This document shows, one piece after another, positions 3,618 through 64,000 of a DNA stretch of 64,000 nt. The notes beneath the pieces were generated by a model that made no database searches, was not told the DNA's origin, and was given only the letters and a program-made list of their open reading frames with translations. The position numbers were made by a program, and so were the translations under genes. Position 1 is the stretch's first letter. The number at the start of each line of letters is the position of its first letter. Where the stretch lies: contig CATNEN010000030.1 of assembly GCA_950097015.1 (NCBI GenBank), positions 2,480,001-2,544,000 on the forward strand, written 5' to 3'. This DNA comes from Macrostomum hystrix. Taxonomy: Eukaryota; Animalia; Platyhelminthes.

Positions 3618-5983
3618 TGTCTGCAATATATGATATGTGTTTTAGATAAGGCCTATTTATGAAATATAGGTTATCTAAAAATGTAAAGCAGTTACATGTC
3701 AAATGTAAATGGACAATTCCACAGGAAAACTATACCTAACTGACAGTAGAAGTTAGCTAGTTAGTTTGATTATTATCTTATTATCCTTATAAATCTATAA
3801 ACAATAAATCCATTTATTGAGACTGTTTGTTGATAAATGATTAGAAATAAATATTTTAATTTTAGCAAGGTAAATAAACTTAAAAAGGAAATAGGCCTAC
3901 TCCCAAAAGTAGAAAATTAAAAAAAGATTTATAAAAAAGTGTATTTGTTTCTTATATAACAAAATGACAATGTGCAACCTAACTAGCTGTTTTAAAAAAA
4001 TTAAAAAAATCACCAACGAAAGAAAATTTGTAAGATGAAAATTTTTTTTATTAAGGTGGTCATAAGCTCAGAGTTCCAGTTCCTTAACCAAGCCAGTAGA
4101 TTCTTATGGAGACATATATAGCATACAGCTATAGGCCTATCCCTATATACAATTATACAACAGGCTAATTCAGATATGCTTACTAAAAACTATTTTACAA
4201 AGTTTCTTCTAAAGACATGTTAATAGCAAACTAGATAGCGGCATACAAAGACTAGAAAACTGTAGCTCACTCAGTAGCTACAGAAGTACAGAATACGACT
4301 GCTCTATACTATAGACTATAGTACTATCCAGTTACAAATTTCTAAATGCCTAGCACATTCATTCCTAAATTGCAAGTATATTTGAGGAGTTAAAAGGCTA
4401 CAACATAAAAATGTTTTTATTTTGAAATACAAATTATGAATGTTGGAAGGTTAGCTGGCTACAATTATCAAACAACTAGAACTTGAAACTTTTAAACTGA
4501 AAAGGAAAAATAAACTTAAACTAGATTAGATGCAAACAGTTAAAAATTATTTTTGCATATAATTTGAAATTATTACTTTCATTGTTCAGATGCATGATTT
4601 GGTTACCTAAATTTATGATAGGCCCTATTAGATAACCATAGGCATAGCATATAGTGGCATTAGCATGCTTCCATGTCAAAACGGGCCCATGTCAAAATGG
4701 CCTTCTATGGGTTCCTTTTGTTATTATTCAGGGCAACTGTTTAAATAACGGTAAATTAGAAGACTCTCGGGTGGCCAAATATCGTCTGGCAATTTTGCCC
4801 TGTGACTGTTTGGGTTTTGGCTGTTTTGGAGTGTACCGCATTAGCATAACTATCTAGTTTACATACTTTAACGACCGATGGTACTAAATTGAAGTAAGTG
4901 CAAAACCTTCAGGCTTTTTATATATACGTCAGCTGAAATGACTGAATATCTGTTGGTCAAGCAAAGAGCAGTTTAGGTGCTCAAAACGTTCGAAGACTGG
5001 AAACTTAATTATCGGAAATCCGATGACTCCAAAATATGATAAAACCGTTGTTGTAAGGCAGAAACGAACAGAAAGATGGTATTCTATTTTTTTTAAACTA
5101 TAGCTAAACCTTTGCAATTACCTTTGTTTTTGTTTCCGTCTTTCTGTCTTACACAACAATGTGATTGTGTTTTATTACTTACAAGCTTCAGTTAAACTTT
5201 TTAACTTCCGCATCTTGTTATGTTTTTGAAAACAGTTTCTAAATGTTATCGTGTACTCATTTCTGCCTGTCCTACTGCAGACTACTAAAAAACCTTTTTG
5301 TATGCTTTGTATCTCTGTATCTGTATGTCAGTATAAACTTATTTCGTAAATGGAATGAACTGAATAGAAAAACTAAATACTAAGACATTTTTTAGGATAA
5401 AAAAGCTAATAAAACTTTCATCATTACTGTTAGGCTCAAAACACTAATACAACACGGGCTTTGTGGAATCATCTGTTTAGTAGTTTTTTGGAGAGCACTG
5501 TGAGCTATAAAAATTAGCTTTAAATAACCTTTTCAAGCCTGACTGAAAGCTCCATCGTCCAATTTCTAGAGAGCAGTTTTAAATCACTATTAATCATGTT
5601 GTAGTCAGAAGTACAAATTAAAAAAAGAGTTAAGATTTCATTTCGGGTCAGAATTTAGCATAAAATTTTATTTTACAACGTATTTTAGTAGTAAGACACA
5701 AAATCAGATTTCATAAAATCTAAAATTGAAATCTTTATAAGAATTGTTTGTATTTGTAAGTATTAAAATTATATCCACATTTGTCATTGATAAAATGTGT
5801 TTCATTTAGGTTTTAAAACTAAAACTTTGCTACTATAGAGAATTGTGTAGAAAAGACTTTTCACACTTTTTTTAGGATTTAGGACTTTCAGAATTTTCCC
5901 TTTTTTATTTTACTTTAAAATACTTCATAAGATGATAGAAGACAATTTTACCTTTAATTTCAGCTCAGTACCTAGTGCCACCA

Positions 5984-58325: not shown

Positions 58326-61300
58326 ATGGAAGAATTCTACTTTGACAAAGAATTTAAAGAACAGTCCGATTTTAACTTCGACCAGTACCAGTACCTGTTC
58401 GGCCTGCAGCCTAAGCCGGACAGCGCTGAAGATAATCAACTGCCAGTTGGCATTGTAAAAAAGACGCGCTCAATAAGGCACAAATCTGGCGGCAGCGACG
58501 CTTCAGATTCCATCAGTCAGTTGTTGCACGTGACTTTCAAACAGGCAGATAATGGCGATCAACTGGGTGATGATTATCTAGATGATGACGGTGACGATAG
58601 TGCTTTTATTGCCGACAGCCTCTTAGGCGCGACGTCCACTTCGATGCGGCTTCCGTCTAGAAAGCATCGACATCGATTGCCGCCGGATTCGGCCCCCGCC
58701 CAGCCGACTGGCATTCCCACGCCTGCTCCAGTGCGGCATAGGCAGCAGCAGCAGAAGAATGAGCACCTACCAAGGCGTGTCAAATCGCGCGATCCTTCGC
58801 CATTGGATCACGGATCAGTTGGATTTAGAAATCGATATAGCAACGGCGATGCTGAGAACGATCGAGGAGGTAGTGCAGCCAGTCTTATAGCCTGTAAAAT
58901 TGTCACTGCATTGAATTTAAATCTTTAGGCATGGTTTCAAACAGAAGATATGCTGGATCTCCAAACAGAATACACTAAAATTCCAAGTTTTTACTGTCAT
59001 AATTGTTAACTATGTCCAGACATAAGCGTATCTATTATCTGTCTTAACTATAACACTGTCTGTTCCGCTTTTCTTCCAGAGCAGCACAGCGGACAGCTAT
59101 CACAGCGCCATATGAACCGGCCAACTAACAATGGCGGCCAGCTGAGGCGGCCGCAGCAGCAATACGCCGGCGTTGGCCGGGTTGCAATGTCCTCCGCTGC
59201 TAGTGAGTCTTGCTCTCAGTGTACTGCCAACTCTATTGGTTTGAATAGATCCTGATCCTCAGTTAAAACAGGCACCATCTTCCCAGATCCTCATCTCAAA
59301 CAAGCATTATCTTCCCAGATCCTCATTTCAAACAGGCAGCTTCCCAGATCCTCATTTCAAACAGGCACCATCTTCCCAGATCCTCATTTCAAACAGGCAC
59401 CATCTTCCCAGATCCTCATTTCAAACAGGCACCATCTTCCCAGATCCTCATTTCAAACAAGCATTATCTTCCCAGATCCTCATTTCAAACAGGCAGCTTC
59501 CCAGATCCTCATTTCAAACAGGCACCATCTTCCCAGATCCTCATTTCAAACAGGCACCATCTTCCCAGATCCTCATTTCAAACAGGCACCATCTTCCCAG
59601 ATCCTCATTTCAAACAAGCATTATCTTCCCAGATCCTCATTTCAAACAGGCAGCTTCCCAGATCCTCATTTCAAACAGGCACTATCTTCCCAGATCCTCA
59701 GTTCAAACAGGCACCATCTTCCCAGATCCTCATTTCAAACAGGCACCATCTTCCCAGATCCTCAGTTCAAACAGGCACCATCTTCCCAGATCCTCAGTTC
59801 AAACAGGCACCATCTTCCCAGATCCTCATTTCAAACAGGCACCATCTTCCCAGATCCTCATTTTAAACAGGCACCATCTTCCCAGATCCTCATTTCAAAC
59901 AGGCACCATCTTCCCAGATCCTCATTTCAAACAGGCACCATCTTCCCAGATCCTCATTTCAAACAGGCACTATCTTCCCAGATCCTCATTTCAAACAGGC
60001 ACCATCTTCCCAGATCCTCAGTTCAAACAGGCACCATCTTCCCAGATCCTCAGTTCAAACAGGCACCATCTTCCCAGATCCTCATTTCAAACAGGCACCA
60101 TCTTCCCAGATCCTCATTTTAAACAGGCACCATCTTCCCAGATCCTCATTTCAAACAGGCACCATCTTCCCAGATCCTCATTTCAAACAGGCACCATCTT
60201 CCCAGATCCTCATTTCAAACAGGCACTATCTTCCCAGATCCTCATTTCAAACAGGCACCATCTTCCCAGATCCTCATTTCAAACAGGCACCATCTTCCCA
60301 GATCCTCATTTCAAACAGGCACCATCTTCCCAGATCCTCAGTTGAAGAAGCCAATCGAAACAGTTCTTAGGCTCCTAGAGCTATAGGATCTATATTAGCC
60401 CCAAAAAAGGCATAAAAACAGGTCCTAATGTTCCTGAAGTAATGTACTTTTGTGCATTTTCTCTCCACCATGCATCAAGAATTAGCAACTGGTTGGCATT
60501 AGGCAGCGAAAACCGTACGCCTTTTTACGTATGTAAAAGCCTGTCCTATCGATTCAGGCATCTAAAGATGCCCAACATAGTTAATCCCCCAAGCTAAAGA
60601 AGTAATTCATCTCGTTTTCGTGGAAATGTAATTAGATTTCAACCCAATGCTGAATTGTATCATCAGATTAATCATTTCGTTAGTTGAACTTTTAAAATAT
60701 GCTAAGCTATGGTATGGATTTTGAATATAAGTTTATATATAACTCGTTAAACTAGTTAAGTATTGATTTTTACTGCAGGAGTGATAAAATTAAACTAACT
60801 TGTTATAAATGCACGTCTGATGTACGCTTGCAGTAAACCTAAATTCATTTCCAATTATGGAATGACTAAGACAGGCTTACGAGGAATTACTAACCACGTT
60901 TTACCTTTACTCCCTCCCCGTTCGGCTGAGTAGATTTTTCTGTTCTGTATTTAAAATCTGAAATTTTATTTGCGCCACTTCCTGTGCTTATAATTGCATG
61001 CTGAATATGCGCCACTTGTTATAATGCAATTATAGTTTTCCTATACTTTCGGGTCTACCAGTGTGGGGCTATAATATCTATTAGAGCATGCTTTCGCAAA
61101 CTCTCATTGTTCCCATCAAATGACTCAACACTTTACGGAAAAAATTGAAGTTTTTTTTTGAGCTTAGCTTAATGTGGTATAATTACGATAAAGGAGTTGA
61201 GCCCAAATGCAATAATTATTTGCGCAGTAAGGCTACGGCCACTGACTAATCATTTGCCAGCGATCTATTTGTATGGAAATAGAGACAGTTGAACTAATAA

Positions 61301-63839
61301 TAATTCTGCTCATTCTGCTCATTTCGCTGACTCCTGAGCACACGCGCACACAGATATCGAACGCAGGCACACTCACACAGGTGTGTACATCTGCATCTGC
61401 TGACTTTCTCATCGTCAGGCAGTGTACACTCTCTTGACTTAGCTGCAGGGGGCATCTTCCGGATGCAGCGGGGAGGCGTTGCCGCCCATTCCGCTAGCCC
61501 CTGGCGACCACGGGCAACTAAAGCTGCGGCGTCTATAGTTGGACTCCATAGTCGCTGGAAAGAGAGAAAAGAAAAATAAAAATAAAAGCCGCTAATGGCC
61601 GGATAAACTCCCTGGACCTTTCAGCCCCTCAGCGGTGAGACCTTAGGCATAAGAGGACACCTAGAGCAGTGCCAGGCCCGCAGACTGGCCGCATACCCTG
61701 TTGAGGTCGAAGGGTGACACCTGTCCCTCAGAGCCGTAGCCAGAGGTACCCAGTTTGGCCAGAGGCCCTGGATGGGTCATCCAGCGCTGTTGCCCATTCT
61801 GTCCGGCTGCCCTAGGGTCAGCCTTGAACACTCGCGGGACGTGTACCCATGGGTCAGCTGACGGGACAGCGTGGAGGGATTCCTGCACCCGAAGGCACAG
61901 GGCTCCTTCCTGCCGGCCTGCTCAAAAAGCGACTGCAGGTGTGAGGCATCGCAGACCTTAGCCCGTGGGCCTGGACTGACTCATACCTCACAGGCGCTGT
62001 GTCCCGCCGGTGCGAGCGTGTACACTCTCACTGTGCCTTGGATGGTTGACTCCGCAAAGGCGTAGATTGCAAGACAAGCCTGCAAGCCTTCTCTCCGCGG
62101 CTGCGCCTCAGATTAGAGCTCAGGGACATTGGCGCGAATGTCAGACGTTGAAGTCGAAAGGAAGTAAAACTCCCTGGTTTGCCCCACCCCATTGGAAGCA
62201 CATTTTTTAACAAGGATCGATCTCTAATCCATATAGGGGCTGGTGAGCGGTCTAAAGCGTTTGCCTCTCGCACCACCAAGATCCCTGAGCTCTATTCCGC
62301 GGTAAGGTCGCATTACTTTGGTGCCGCATTCGCGTAGAGATGGCTTGTCGTACAATTTACACCCTTGAGGGTGGAGTATAAGAAAGTCAGGCCAGATTGT
62401 GCGCACCTGTGAGAATCTATGCCTGCGTAAAGTATCAGTGTGCATTTGTGCTCAAGAGTCAGTGGAATGGGCAGAATTGCCAGTACCCACAGCCCTCTTA
62501 AAAAGATAATTCTTATTTACATGCTTTCTTTGTTACTGGCCTCATTTAATGTCCCTTTAAAATGCCAGCATCCCAGCAACAGTAGCTATCAACAATGATA
62601 ATCTCGCTGCTGCTATAACAGGCTATGCCAGCTGCGTTAGTAGGCGCGCCACAGTTGCCACAGTTGACGATGTTGTGAGCAGCTTCGGCCTGACGGCCAG
62701 GCCGCCCGCAGCGTTGCCTAGGCAACGCTCGGACTCTACAGGTATCTTTTTTGTAGTCACTTGTTACGAAATAAATGTTAGATTTTTTTCAGAATCTTTC
62801 TCTTTAGCGTGAAAGCAGCGTATACTATGCAATTTTAGTCTGCTAATCTTATCTGTGTTTCCTCATACGCGTATTTCCGGATTAGTTTGTGTCTTGTGTC
62901 TGCCTCTCTCTCTATATACTGTATCAGTGTTGAACTTGACTATCTTTTTGGCAGAAAAATAGTTTATATTGAGTTAAGTGCAAATAGATGTATGAAAATA
63001 TGACAGCTAATATTCCAAGGACCACTAGATCTAGAACCAAGGAATAAAAAATCCCACTCGCAAACACAACTTTTGTTGCTAACCCAGTATAACCCGTGAC
63101 AATAATTAATGATTTATACGCAAAAGATCTACTAGCCAGATATTAAGACATTTTCTGATTCTACGAGTATCTACTGTCAGAGGCTATAGTTATGTTTTAT
63201 TTGGTTGTTTAATTTTCTAAGAATGTACATAACGCACCCTTACACGCTTAGATCTAAAATACAGTAGGATTATATAGGAATTTCGCACATTGTCAGCACT
63301 ATTTTCTTTCTAGGAATTTGGTTTTGTGCTTGTTTTTGTACCATAAACAAACATTAGTTAATAATCAGTTATTAATCAGTCTTTCGTGTCTTCTGTGCAT
63401 TTTATTGTCTTTTATAGACAAATAAAGTGTAGGTGTCTTATCTTGATGTAATTTTCTTTATTGTATTAATTCTTATCATTATAACTCACCGAATCATCAC
63501 ATTTTCTATATTGTAAAGTTTGGCAATTGATGTATGCGAATTTAGTGTGGCGCCCATCGGTCCATGGACTGAACAGCCGTACGCAGCCTTCAGATGCGCC
63601 GCGCAATAGCTGCGGCTGTGCTGTCGGCTGCACATCTGGCCCGATAGTGGCAGGTGTAATCAGTTATTAATAATAATAATTATTATTACTATCCAAATCA
63701 GTGTTATATGCAAGATTTTGTTTCATATTGAATTGCACCTAAATACTCGTTATTTTTCCGTTAAAAATTCAACACAGGCGCCGGATCAGTAGACGAAGAC
63801 GCTTTCCTGATAGCATTTGAGCAGGTGCCCAAGTTAAAT
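58326..63839 (+). CDS. CLASP: CLASP (CLIP-associating protein) 5' part with a novel low-complexity N-terminus; continues beyond the window
   Basis: Exons 58326-58869, 59080-59202, 62577-62741 and 63778-63839 are phase-compatible GT-AG. The last exon, GAGSVDEDAFLIAFEQVPKLN, matches the CLASP pre-TOG2 motif GAGAVDEEDFIKAFDDVP. Linkage of the first three exons to it is inferred. Confidence 0.65.
59250..60343. repeat. 32-bp minisatellite (CTTCCCAGATCCTCATTTCAAACAGGCACCAT), ~34 units
   Basis: Tandem units; a 157-bp higher-order period recurs at 59301, 59458 and 59615. Confidence 0.97.
61320..62135 (-). mobile_element. SINE-A copy interrupted by a 584-bp insertion
   Basis: 61320-61433 and 62030-62135 join seamlessly into the SINE-A consensus once the insert and one TSD copy are removed. 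Confidence 0.8.
61434..62017 (-). mobile_element. Unclassified 584-bp GC-rich non-coding insertion with 12-bp TSD (retroposed structured RNA?)
   Basis: GTGTACACTCTC is duplicated at 61422-61433 and 62018-62029. There is no credible ORF, and the minus strand forms hairpins with UUCG, GAAA and GCAA loops. Confidence 0.75.
62235..62486 (+). mobile_element. SINE-A copy, 3'-truncated
   Basis: Head TTGCCTCTCGCACC...CCCTGAGCTCTATTCC through GAGTCAGTGGAATGGGCAGAATTGCC. Confidence 0.75.
62712..62725. promoter_or_regulatory. RFX X-box-like palindrome GTTGCCTAGGCAAC
   Basis: Matches GTNRCC-N0-3-RGYAAC and lies within a perfect 20-bp palindrome at 62710-62729; function is unproven. Confidence 0.35.
63553..63690 (+). 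mobile_element. SINE-B 3' half with (TAA/ATT)n tail
   Basis: GTCCATGGACTGAACAGCCGTACGCAGCCTTCAGATGCGCCGCGC...GCTGCACATCTGGCCC is near-identical to the copy at 51105. Confidence 0.8.
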
Positions 63840-64000
63840 GTGAGTTCTTTTTTTGCTTTGAATTTAACAATACGCTGCCTATTGCTCTAAAATCTCAAAA
63901 TTAAGTGTGTTAAAAGGCACATTCTTGACATGGAATGTGCCTTATTAAAATATGATGTCTTTCAATACACATTTCTTAAATGTGATGTGTTCCAATAGGC

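Follow-up and report, generated by a model that had tools for sequence, protein, structure and literature searches.

A 584-bp insert in a SINE of Macrostomum hystrix joins the two ends of an autonomous LINE

The insert is composed of the two ends of one LINE

The genome of the flatworm Macrostomum hystrix contains, within a stretch of 64,000 nucleotides (nt) (positions 2,480,001 to 2,544,000 of contig CATNEN010000030.1, assembly GCA_950097015.1; referred to here as the window), a 584-bp insert located inside a copy of the short interspersed nuclear element (SINE) SINE-A. The insert is one internally deleted copy of a long interspersed nuclear element (LINE), in which the head of an autonomous element of approximately 6 kb is joined directly to its tail. 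The best explanation is that the insert is a head-to-tail copy of the LINE, probably inserted by target-primed reverse transcription, and we consider this account very probable as a whole; within it, the loss of the middle by a template switch is only slightly favored.

Searches of the genome, which comprised 220 Mb in 42 contigs, showed that the 584-bp sequence is repetitive as two separate blocks, corresponding to window positions 61533-62017 and 61434-61533. The best 40 candidates were scored in each search, and the copy counts are lower bounds. When a contig contains both blocks, the distance between them is about 6 kb, and in the full copies L043, L044, and L045 approximately 5.2-5.4 kb of sequence lies between them. 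The two halves of the insert are collinear with the two ends of one autonomous LINE. Identity is 88-96% in the head and reaches 98-99% in the tail, which matches the 3' ends of at least 40 scored loci at this level. No base of the insert is left unexplained by the LINE. The open reading frames (ORFs) of the LINE are located on the strand complementary to the plus strand of the window, and an initial annotation of the insert was therefore right in choosing the minus strand as the RNA strand. The insert contains the following parts, including untranslated regions (UTRs) at both ends:

61533..62017, minus strand: 5'-terminal 485 nt of the LINE, composed of a 468-nt 5'UTR starting GCTCGCACCGG, the ATG of ORF1, and 14 nt; mapped on L043-L045
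61434..61533, minus strand: 3'-terminal 100 nt of the LINE, in which 13 nt from the end of the ORF2 coding sequence precede its TAG stop codon and an 84-nt 3'UTR that ends with GCTAAGTCAA
61533, minus strand: deletion junction, a single G common to both sides; approximately 5.2-5.4 kb of the parent is absent
61549-61547, minus strand: retained start codon of the parent ORF1, which now opens a 36-codon out-of-frame remnant
61555..61588, minus strand: pyrimidine tract with a terminal CAG, separated by 5 nt from the downstream ORF1 ATG and shared by both LINE subfamilies
61680..61750, minus strand: 71-nt core of a 97-bp 5'UTR monomer, one unit; match rows 247-317 are spaced 97 bp
61444..61503, minus strand: Y-shaped three-way junction of 60 nt, -30 kcal/mol, z = -2.1

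The block 61533-62017 is present at many loci, and it stops at one base, which reads ...GGTGCGAGC on the plus strand. The sequences beyond this base were unrelated in all 29 other copies that were read. Therefore, the head of the insert begins at the exact 5' end of the LINE family. The tail block maps to L044:6475-6574, with the stop codon of ORF2 at L044:6488-6490. The boundaries of the deleted interval were read in L043-L045. The interval starts with GCTCCA/CTCCAG and ends with CTGCGC(G), which gives a microhomology of 1 nt.

The internal pyrimidine tract had been interpreted in the initial annotation as a retained 3' splice site. The tract is real, but it is native to the 5'UTR of the parent: it is present together with CAG, 5 nt before the ATG, in every full-length copy of subfamily A that was read. 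It is thus a normal feature of the LINE 5'UTR and not a scar of the deletion. The tract and CAG are located 2-5 nt before the ORF1 ATG across two subfamilies that are otherwise about 25% diverged in this region (L007:2610-2672), and they could serve as an acceptor for a spliced leader. A donor-like sequence, GAG/GTATGAGT, occurs at element nt 29-39 (window positions 61979-61989, minus strand). An intron of the 5'UTR extending from this donor-like site to the acceptor-like tract was considered and rejected, as no copies joining the two sites were found among the retrocopies of either subfamily.

The insert interrupts a SINE-A copy

The insert, 61434-62017, is bounded by a perfect 12-bp target-site duplication (TSD). 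The two copies of the sequence GTGTACACTCTC are the sole direct repeat of at least 12 nt within positions 61150-62650. Sixteen other copies of SINE-A were aligned to a version of the window from which the insert and one repeat had been removed. They contain GTGTACACTCTC once and continue without interruption into the right flank of the window sequence. Because the intact SINE-A has the 12-mer once and reads into the right flank, the duplication is a true TSD, and the borders at 61434 and 62017 are real. The repeat search and the SINE-A alignment thus confirm the 584-bp insert with a perfect 12-bp duplication that the initial annotation had placed inside SINE-A. The "SINE-A hairpin" that it described around the insert consists of a pair of SINE-A copies in opposite orientations (inverted arms I1, I2, and I4). 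The features of the target site are:

61422..61433: left copy of the TSD, GTGTACACTCTC, part of the host SINE-A sequence
62018..62029: right copy of the TSD, from the repeat search and the SINE-A alignment
61312-61433 plus 62018-62190, minus strand: SINE-A copy in minus sense, split by the insert
62236-62480, plus strand: SINE-A copy in plus sense, the inverted partner

SINE-A is very abundant: a first look at the genome yielded over 1100 candidates. Its consensus copies have a tRNA-like head, which ARAGORN did not call as a tRNA, and ATT/TAA-type repeats at the end; their 3' end differs from that of the LINE from which the insert is derived. SINE-A was probably mobilized by a LINE other than the parent of the insert.

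The repeat search found no long terminal repeat (LTR), terminal inverted repeat (TIR), or other terminal repeats in the insert. The insert has no poly-A, and it does not contain any ATG-started ORF of at least 40 amino acids. No tRNA was detected by ARAGORN in the whole window. A permissive Rfam search (E<=1) of both strands of positions 60000-64000 produced no match, self-cleaving ribozymes included. These results bear out the description of the insert as lacking a tRNA head, TIR, LTR, poly-A, and a credible ORF; the retained ATG of ORF1 opens just a meaningless frame of 36 codons. Two simple classifications were rejected. The insert is not a solo LTR, since its halves are opposite, non-repeated ends of a LINE, located approximately 5.2-5.4 kb apart in the parent. 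Nor is it a SINE, because it is without an RNA polymerase III head according to ARAGORN and Rfam, and its head is the 5'UTR of a LINE.

A second derivative has a nearly identical joint

Among the 28 5'-intact copies that were read, L007 was the only one with a 3' module nearby. It belongs to a sister subfamily, B, whereas the insert in the window belongs to subfamily A. The second derivative and the two joints are described by the following features, in which the Y module is the three-way junction listed above:

L007:1501-2794 (G000 C9:286502-287795): head-to-tail derivative of subfamily B, 1.29 kb, with the 12-bp TSD GCACCATATGCC
Window joint (subfamily A): 5' breakpoint at ATG+17, 3' breakpoint 30 nt upstream of the Y module
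L007 joint (subfamily B): 5' breakpoint at ATG+18, 3' breakpoint 25 nt upstream of the Y module

In L007, the 5'UTR and an array of 97-bp monomers (L007:1838-2490) are followed by the ATG with 15 nt and then by the last ~94 nt of the element. Its Y module is 80% identical to that of the window. The halves of L007 are 98-100% identical to full-length copies of subfamily B, in which they are spaced by ~5255 nt in four of the five copies where both were located and by ~4.2 kb in the fifth. An 80-mer spanning the L007 junction is unique in the genome, as is that of the window described below. L007 is a second, independent, single-copy event.

The breakpoints of the two derivatives agree within 1 nt when measured from the ATG and within 5 nt when measured from the Y module. 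By our own estimate, the chance of such an agreement is ~2e-5 if breakpoints are uniform over the detectable range. Both joints have a microhomology of 0-1 nt and are without splice-site ends. A third element, C38:9088775-9089090, for which only search coordinates are available, can be aligned across the junction region of subfamily B with an identity of 83-90% and an additional ~26 nt, and judging from these sequence matches it is a probable third independent head-to-tail derivative. The recurrent, position-specific head-to-tail deletion is the sole feature of the insert that goes beyond what is routine for a LINE copy.

The insert is a single event and not a member of an amplified family

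An 80-mer spanning the junction of the insert has a full-length match only in the window. Thirty-eight of its 39 other matches stop at or before the joint. The remaining one, C34:3903905-3903961 (search coordinates only), is 86% identical and continues beyond the junction of subfamily A for 17 nt, which makes it a further candidate for an internally deleted copy. A 24-mer spanning the junction occurs once in the genome when up to three mismatches are allowed. As the joint is unique in the genome, the insert does not represent an amplified family. The halves are collinear on one element, and no other copy with the junction of the insert was found; similarly, the genome searches did not identify a "master" copy with either junction.

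The RIME element of Trypanosoma brucei corresponds to the ingi LINE without its central 4.7 kb, has a TSD of ~12 bp, and forms an amplified family with a copy number about that of ingi (PMC2323293). The likeness of the insert to RIME/ingi, and also to NARTc/L1Tc, is that only the ends of a LINE are present, the coding center is deleted, and the TSD is ~12 bp long. However, RIME was amplified, whereas the element in the window and L007 are single events with unique junctions, which arose repeatedly and have not (yet) spread. The insert shares the architecture of RIME, with the 5' and 3' ends retained and the coding center deleted, without the amplification. Therefore, it does not belong to a non-autonomous family of the RIME type, despite the match in architecture.

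The initial annotation presented the insert as a candidate new structured mobile RNA. This claim fails, since the halves are LINE ends, the junction is unique, and the Infernal/Rfam comparison that it proposed did not identify any structured RNA family. The copy search that it also called for returned, in substance, what it had named as evidence to the contrary, namely the 5'UTR plus 3'UTR of a LINE, joined in a single copy. Its alternative suggestion of a non-autonomous LINE derivative was right in kind, as the insert is one deletion copy of a LINE.

The 3' end contains a conserved Y-shaped module

All of the hairpins that were named in the initial annotation are present in the minimum-energy fold of the minus strand, including the UUCG-capped stem at 61882-61901, the GAAA loop at 61614-61628, and the CUGGAUG/CAUCCAG hairpin at 61768-61784. 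However, the stability of the whole insert is close to that of dinucleotide shuffles, with z = -1.82 for the sense strand (four of 100 shuffles as good) and z = -0.47 for the antisense strand. Most of the "hallmark loops" are therefore attributable to a 5'UTR rich in GC. For the last 100 nt folded separately, z = -1.28. An exceptional stability of the RNA was thus rejected for both the insert (z ~ -1.8) and its last 100 nt (z ~ -1.3).

The three-way junction, which the initial annotation placed at 61446-61503, was confirmed and folds at 61444-61503. Seven sequence variants of the module, taken from other copies and subfamilies, were folded, and six of them keep the Y shape, with compensatory changes. 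One arm of the module occurs as GCAUC/GAUGC, GUCC/GGAC, or GC.UCC/GGA.GC, and another as AGCGG/CCGCU or AGCGA/UCGCU. In an alignment of eight sequences, 93.9% of the cells pair. Sliding the partners reduces this value to 44-61%. In three of the pairs, both nucleotides have changed. The covariation support is modest, as the sequences are few and 28 of 500 shuffles do equally well.

The Y module is the conserved 3' module of the LINE. It is followed by a tail of GTCAA or TAAGTCAA units, and there is no poly-A. In this combination of a structured 3' module with a short repeat tail instead of poly-A, the element resembles LINEs of the stringent type, such as UnaL2 of the eel, with its partner UnaSINE1. 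The reverse transcriptase (RT) of UnaL2 recognizes the 3' stem-loop of its RNA. The module of UnaL2-type elements is a single hairpin, whereas that of the LINE described here is a three-way junction, and its binding by the RT is proposed by analogy. The Y module is, by this analogy, likely to be the recognition site of the LINE's own RT. Further variants of the Y module, with a GCTAAGTCAA-type tail and compensatory changes, are located at L017:78-153 (minus strand) and L065:1947-2048.

Origin of the deletion

Based on the structures of the two derivatives and the hallmarks of LINEs, a mechanism of formation of the insert can be proposed. The LINE RNA would have been inserted into the SINE-A copy by target-primed reverse transcription, which would have made the 12-bp duplication. 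After copying the 3' module, the RT would have switched to a template position just after the start codon of ORF1, skipping ORF1 and ORF2. The switch would have occurred within a single insertion event and at preferred positions. The near-identical joints in two independent derivatives argue that the switch is position-specific. On balance, we slightly favor the loss of the middle by a template switch at insertion.

The switch may be guided by base-pairing of the region of the ORF1 start with a segment of 25-30 nt that immediately precedes the Y module. Such pairing would juxtapose the two sites. In both derivatives, the joint is located in the apical loop of a hairpin, the arms of which are formed by these two regions. 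In a full-length RNA, the arms would form a long-range 5'-3' helix that covers the AUG and is specific to the subfamily. The duplex of the arms has a predicted energy of -24.6 kcal/mol for the window, which places it among the best 0.5% of the 35-nt windows taken from three full elements, and -26.3 kcal/mol for L007, among the best 0.75%. Shuffling of the 3' arm gives p ~0.01 for the window and ~0.01 for L007. The arms differ between the subfamilies, and the cognate pairing is better than the cross-subfamily pairing for eight of nine distinct 5' arms. As an alternative to the helix, a fragment protected by the initiation complex (to about +17/+18) and the RT-bound tail may survive and be joined by an end-to-end template jump. 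A ribosome positioned on the AUG would be expected to have its downstream edge at +17/+18, which coincides with the breakpoint. The idea that the 3' breakpoint was marked by a terminating ribosome was considered and dropped, since the joint of subfamily A fits loosely (12-13 nt before the stop codon), and the frame of subfamily B is not readable. We suggest only tentatively that a juxtaposition of the 5' and 3' ends within the LINE RNA or its RNP, by the AUG-covering helix or by an end-to-end jump between protected fragments, generates RIME-like mini-elements de novo, and regard it as possible rather than probable. If true, it would represent a birth mechanism of non-autonomous LINE derivatives, caught in the act, and would indicate 5'-3' communication in LINE RNA. 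The recurrent joints suggest that RIME-like mini-elements may arise by a position-specific template jump of the RT rather than by random deletion.

Nothing argues against the identity of the insert as a LINE copy; its head is only 88-96% identical to the readable copies, and the exact parent is therefore not among them. Several observations weigh against the proposed mechanism. It rests on two joints that were read, and the idea of the helix is post hoc, as it was formed after both joints had been seen. The same arms in other full-length copies of subfamily A pair with only -17 to -22 kcal/mol, which corresponds to the top 2-7% of windows, and these copies contain better partners for the arms elsewhere in the element. 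Furthermore, an unrelated GC-rich window of the 5'UTR pairs with the same 3' arm at -25 kcal/mol. Internal deletions are found elsewhere in the family, for example in a ~1 kb shorter copy on C1 and in a 3.55-kb copy, C7:3767570-3771124, which are known from coordinates only.

These internal deletions at other places also speak for the rival view that a full-length LINE was inserted first and its central ~5.2-5.4 kb was lost later from the genome, by end-joining or replication slippage. The end product would be identical, with both termini, one TSD, and a microhomology of 0-1 nt. In addition, the head of the copy has diverged by ~4% from its relatives, which shows that the insertion is not of very recent date. 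However, a later deletion would have to reproduce in L007, which belongs to the other subfamily, breakpoints that agree within 1 nt and 5 nt (~2e-5 if uniform), and the third element on C38 spans the same region. We therefore regard a later genomic deletion as unlikely. The middle might instead have been removed from the RNA if the insert were a retrocopy of a spliced LINE transcript, with the tract and CAG as the splicing signal. SpIREs of human L1 are copies without an internal stretch that was removed at the RNA or cDNA stage, and they have canonical splice-site ends. The insert resembles them in the loss of an internal stretch. The conservation of the tract and AG before the ATG in both subfamilies, and the donor-like GAG/GTATGAGT in the 5'UTR, would fit with splicing. 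However, unlike in SpIREs, the joint in the window is without splice ends: the deleted interval has no GT..AG, GC..AG, or AT..AC termini on either strand in subfamily A (L043-L045), and canonical ends are likewise missing in subfamily B, as judged from the related copy L065 (boundaries read in L003-L006 and L065). Moreover, the tract is upstream of the retained ATG, away from the joint. A spliced retrocopy is hardly credible.

An amplified non-autonomous family of structured mobile RNA, copied in trans by LINE enzymes, has the precedent of RIME in trypanosomes (PMC2323293). The insert retains the 5'UTR, the usual site of the LINE promoter, as well as the 3' module, and it might in principle be transcribed and mobilized. 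The uniqueness of the junction in 220 Mb speaks against such a family, and no further copies with different TSDs were found. The other matches cover one half only, the halves are ~6 kb apart in full-length LINEs, and the stability of the fold is near that of shuffles. This possibility is very improbable. The several stable-looking tetraloop hairpins and the lack of an ORF would fit with a retrozyme or viroid-like RNA, or with a non-coding RNA of cellular origin that was retroposed. Against such an origin, there was neither an Rfam match at E<=1 nor a tRNA match, and the LINE explains every base; its probability is practically negligible.

The parent LINE family

The parent of the insert is, judging from its sequence, a conventional LINE encoding an apurinic/apyrimidinic endonuclease (APE), an RT, and RNase H. 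Three full-length elements, L043, L044, and L045, measure 5976, 6074, and 6150 bp, and each has its own TSD of 12-14 bp. Pieces of ORF2 from L043 and L044 matched the Pfam families Exo_endo_phos_2 (PF14529, 1.2e-17; also PF03372), RVT_1 (PF00078, 7.7e-29), and RNase_H (PF00075, 1.7e-12). ORF2 is interrupted in all three full copies of subfamily A that were read. ORF1 encodes approximately 470-490 amino acids, and that of L044 (L044:1266-2684) encodes 472. Pfam searches of ORF1 did not identify any match, and no zinc knuckles were found. In a protein atlas, the ORF1 product of L044 was nearest to arthropod DUF4780 clusters, with a score of 0.92, which is below the recognition threshold and thus a weak lead only.

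A word search with the RT-RNase H part of ORF2 identified 604 relatives at E<=1e-10, most of which, among those listed, carry APE-RT-RNase H. The best relative of ORF2 is 75% identical, and the entries from Macrostomum lignano, the commonest among the few organisms named for the relatives of the LINE proteins, are 40-55% identical. LINE clades with the APE-RT-RNase H arrangement are I, LOA, Ingi, Tad1, and Nimb. The parent has the same order of domains in ORF2 as these elements, two ORFs, and TSDs of 12-14 bp, a likeness by layout only. Its ORF1 differs in being without a Pfam match, apart from the weak DUF4780-like lead.

At least nine of 20 3'-end loci stop within the 1.5 kb that was read, at element positions 4649-5962, and the rest extend beyond; because of the overlap in two pairs of loci, the nine correspond to eight distinct places. 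The common 3' end combined with variable 5' ends is the classical pattern of LINE 5' truncation. The family thus encodes an APE and an RT, has one 3' terminus with variable 5' truncation, and is flanked by TSDs of variable sequence without LTRs or TIRs, as is characteristic of LINEs.

The 97-bp monomers of the 5'UTR are arranged in tandem, and their number varies from one to ~8 among the listed copies (L003-L030). The 5'UTR of mouse L1 carries tandem arrays of monomers that act as promoters. The arrays of the two elements are alike in having a variable number of 5'UTR units (97 bp, one to ~8 here), whereas their sequences are unrelated, and the monomers of the M. hystrix LINE are candidate promoters only by analogy.

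The literature search did not find a description of Macrostomum LINE families or of this LINE family. The element apparently represents an undescribed, recently active LINE family of flatworms with a Y-shaped 3' module, a short-repeat tail, and arrays of 97-bp monomers. Copies of subfamily B are 98-100% identical over probes of 194 nt and 102 nt at many loci (C15, C3, C1, and C39), and this near-identity suggests very recent or ongoing retrotransposition.

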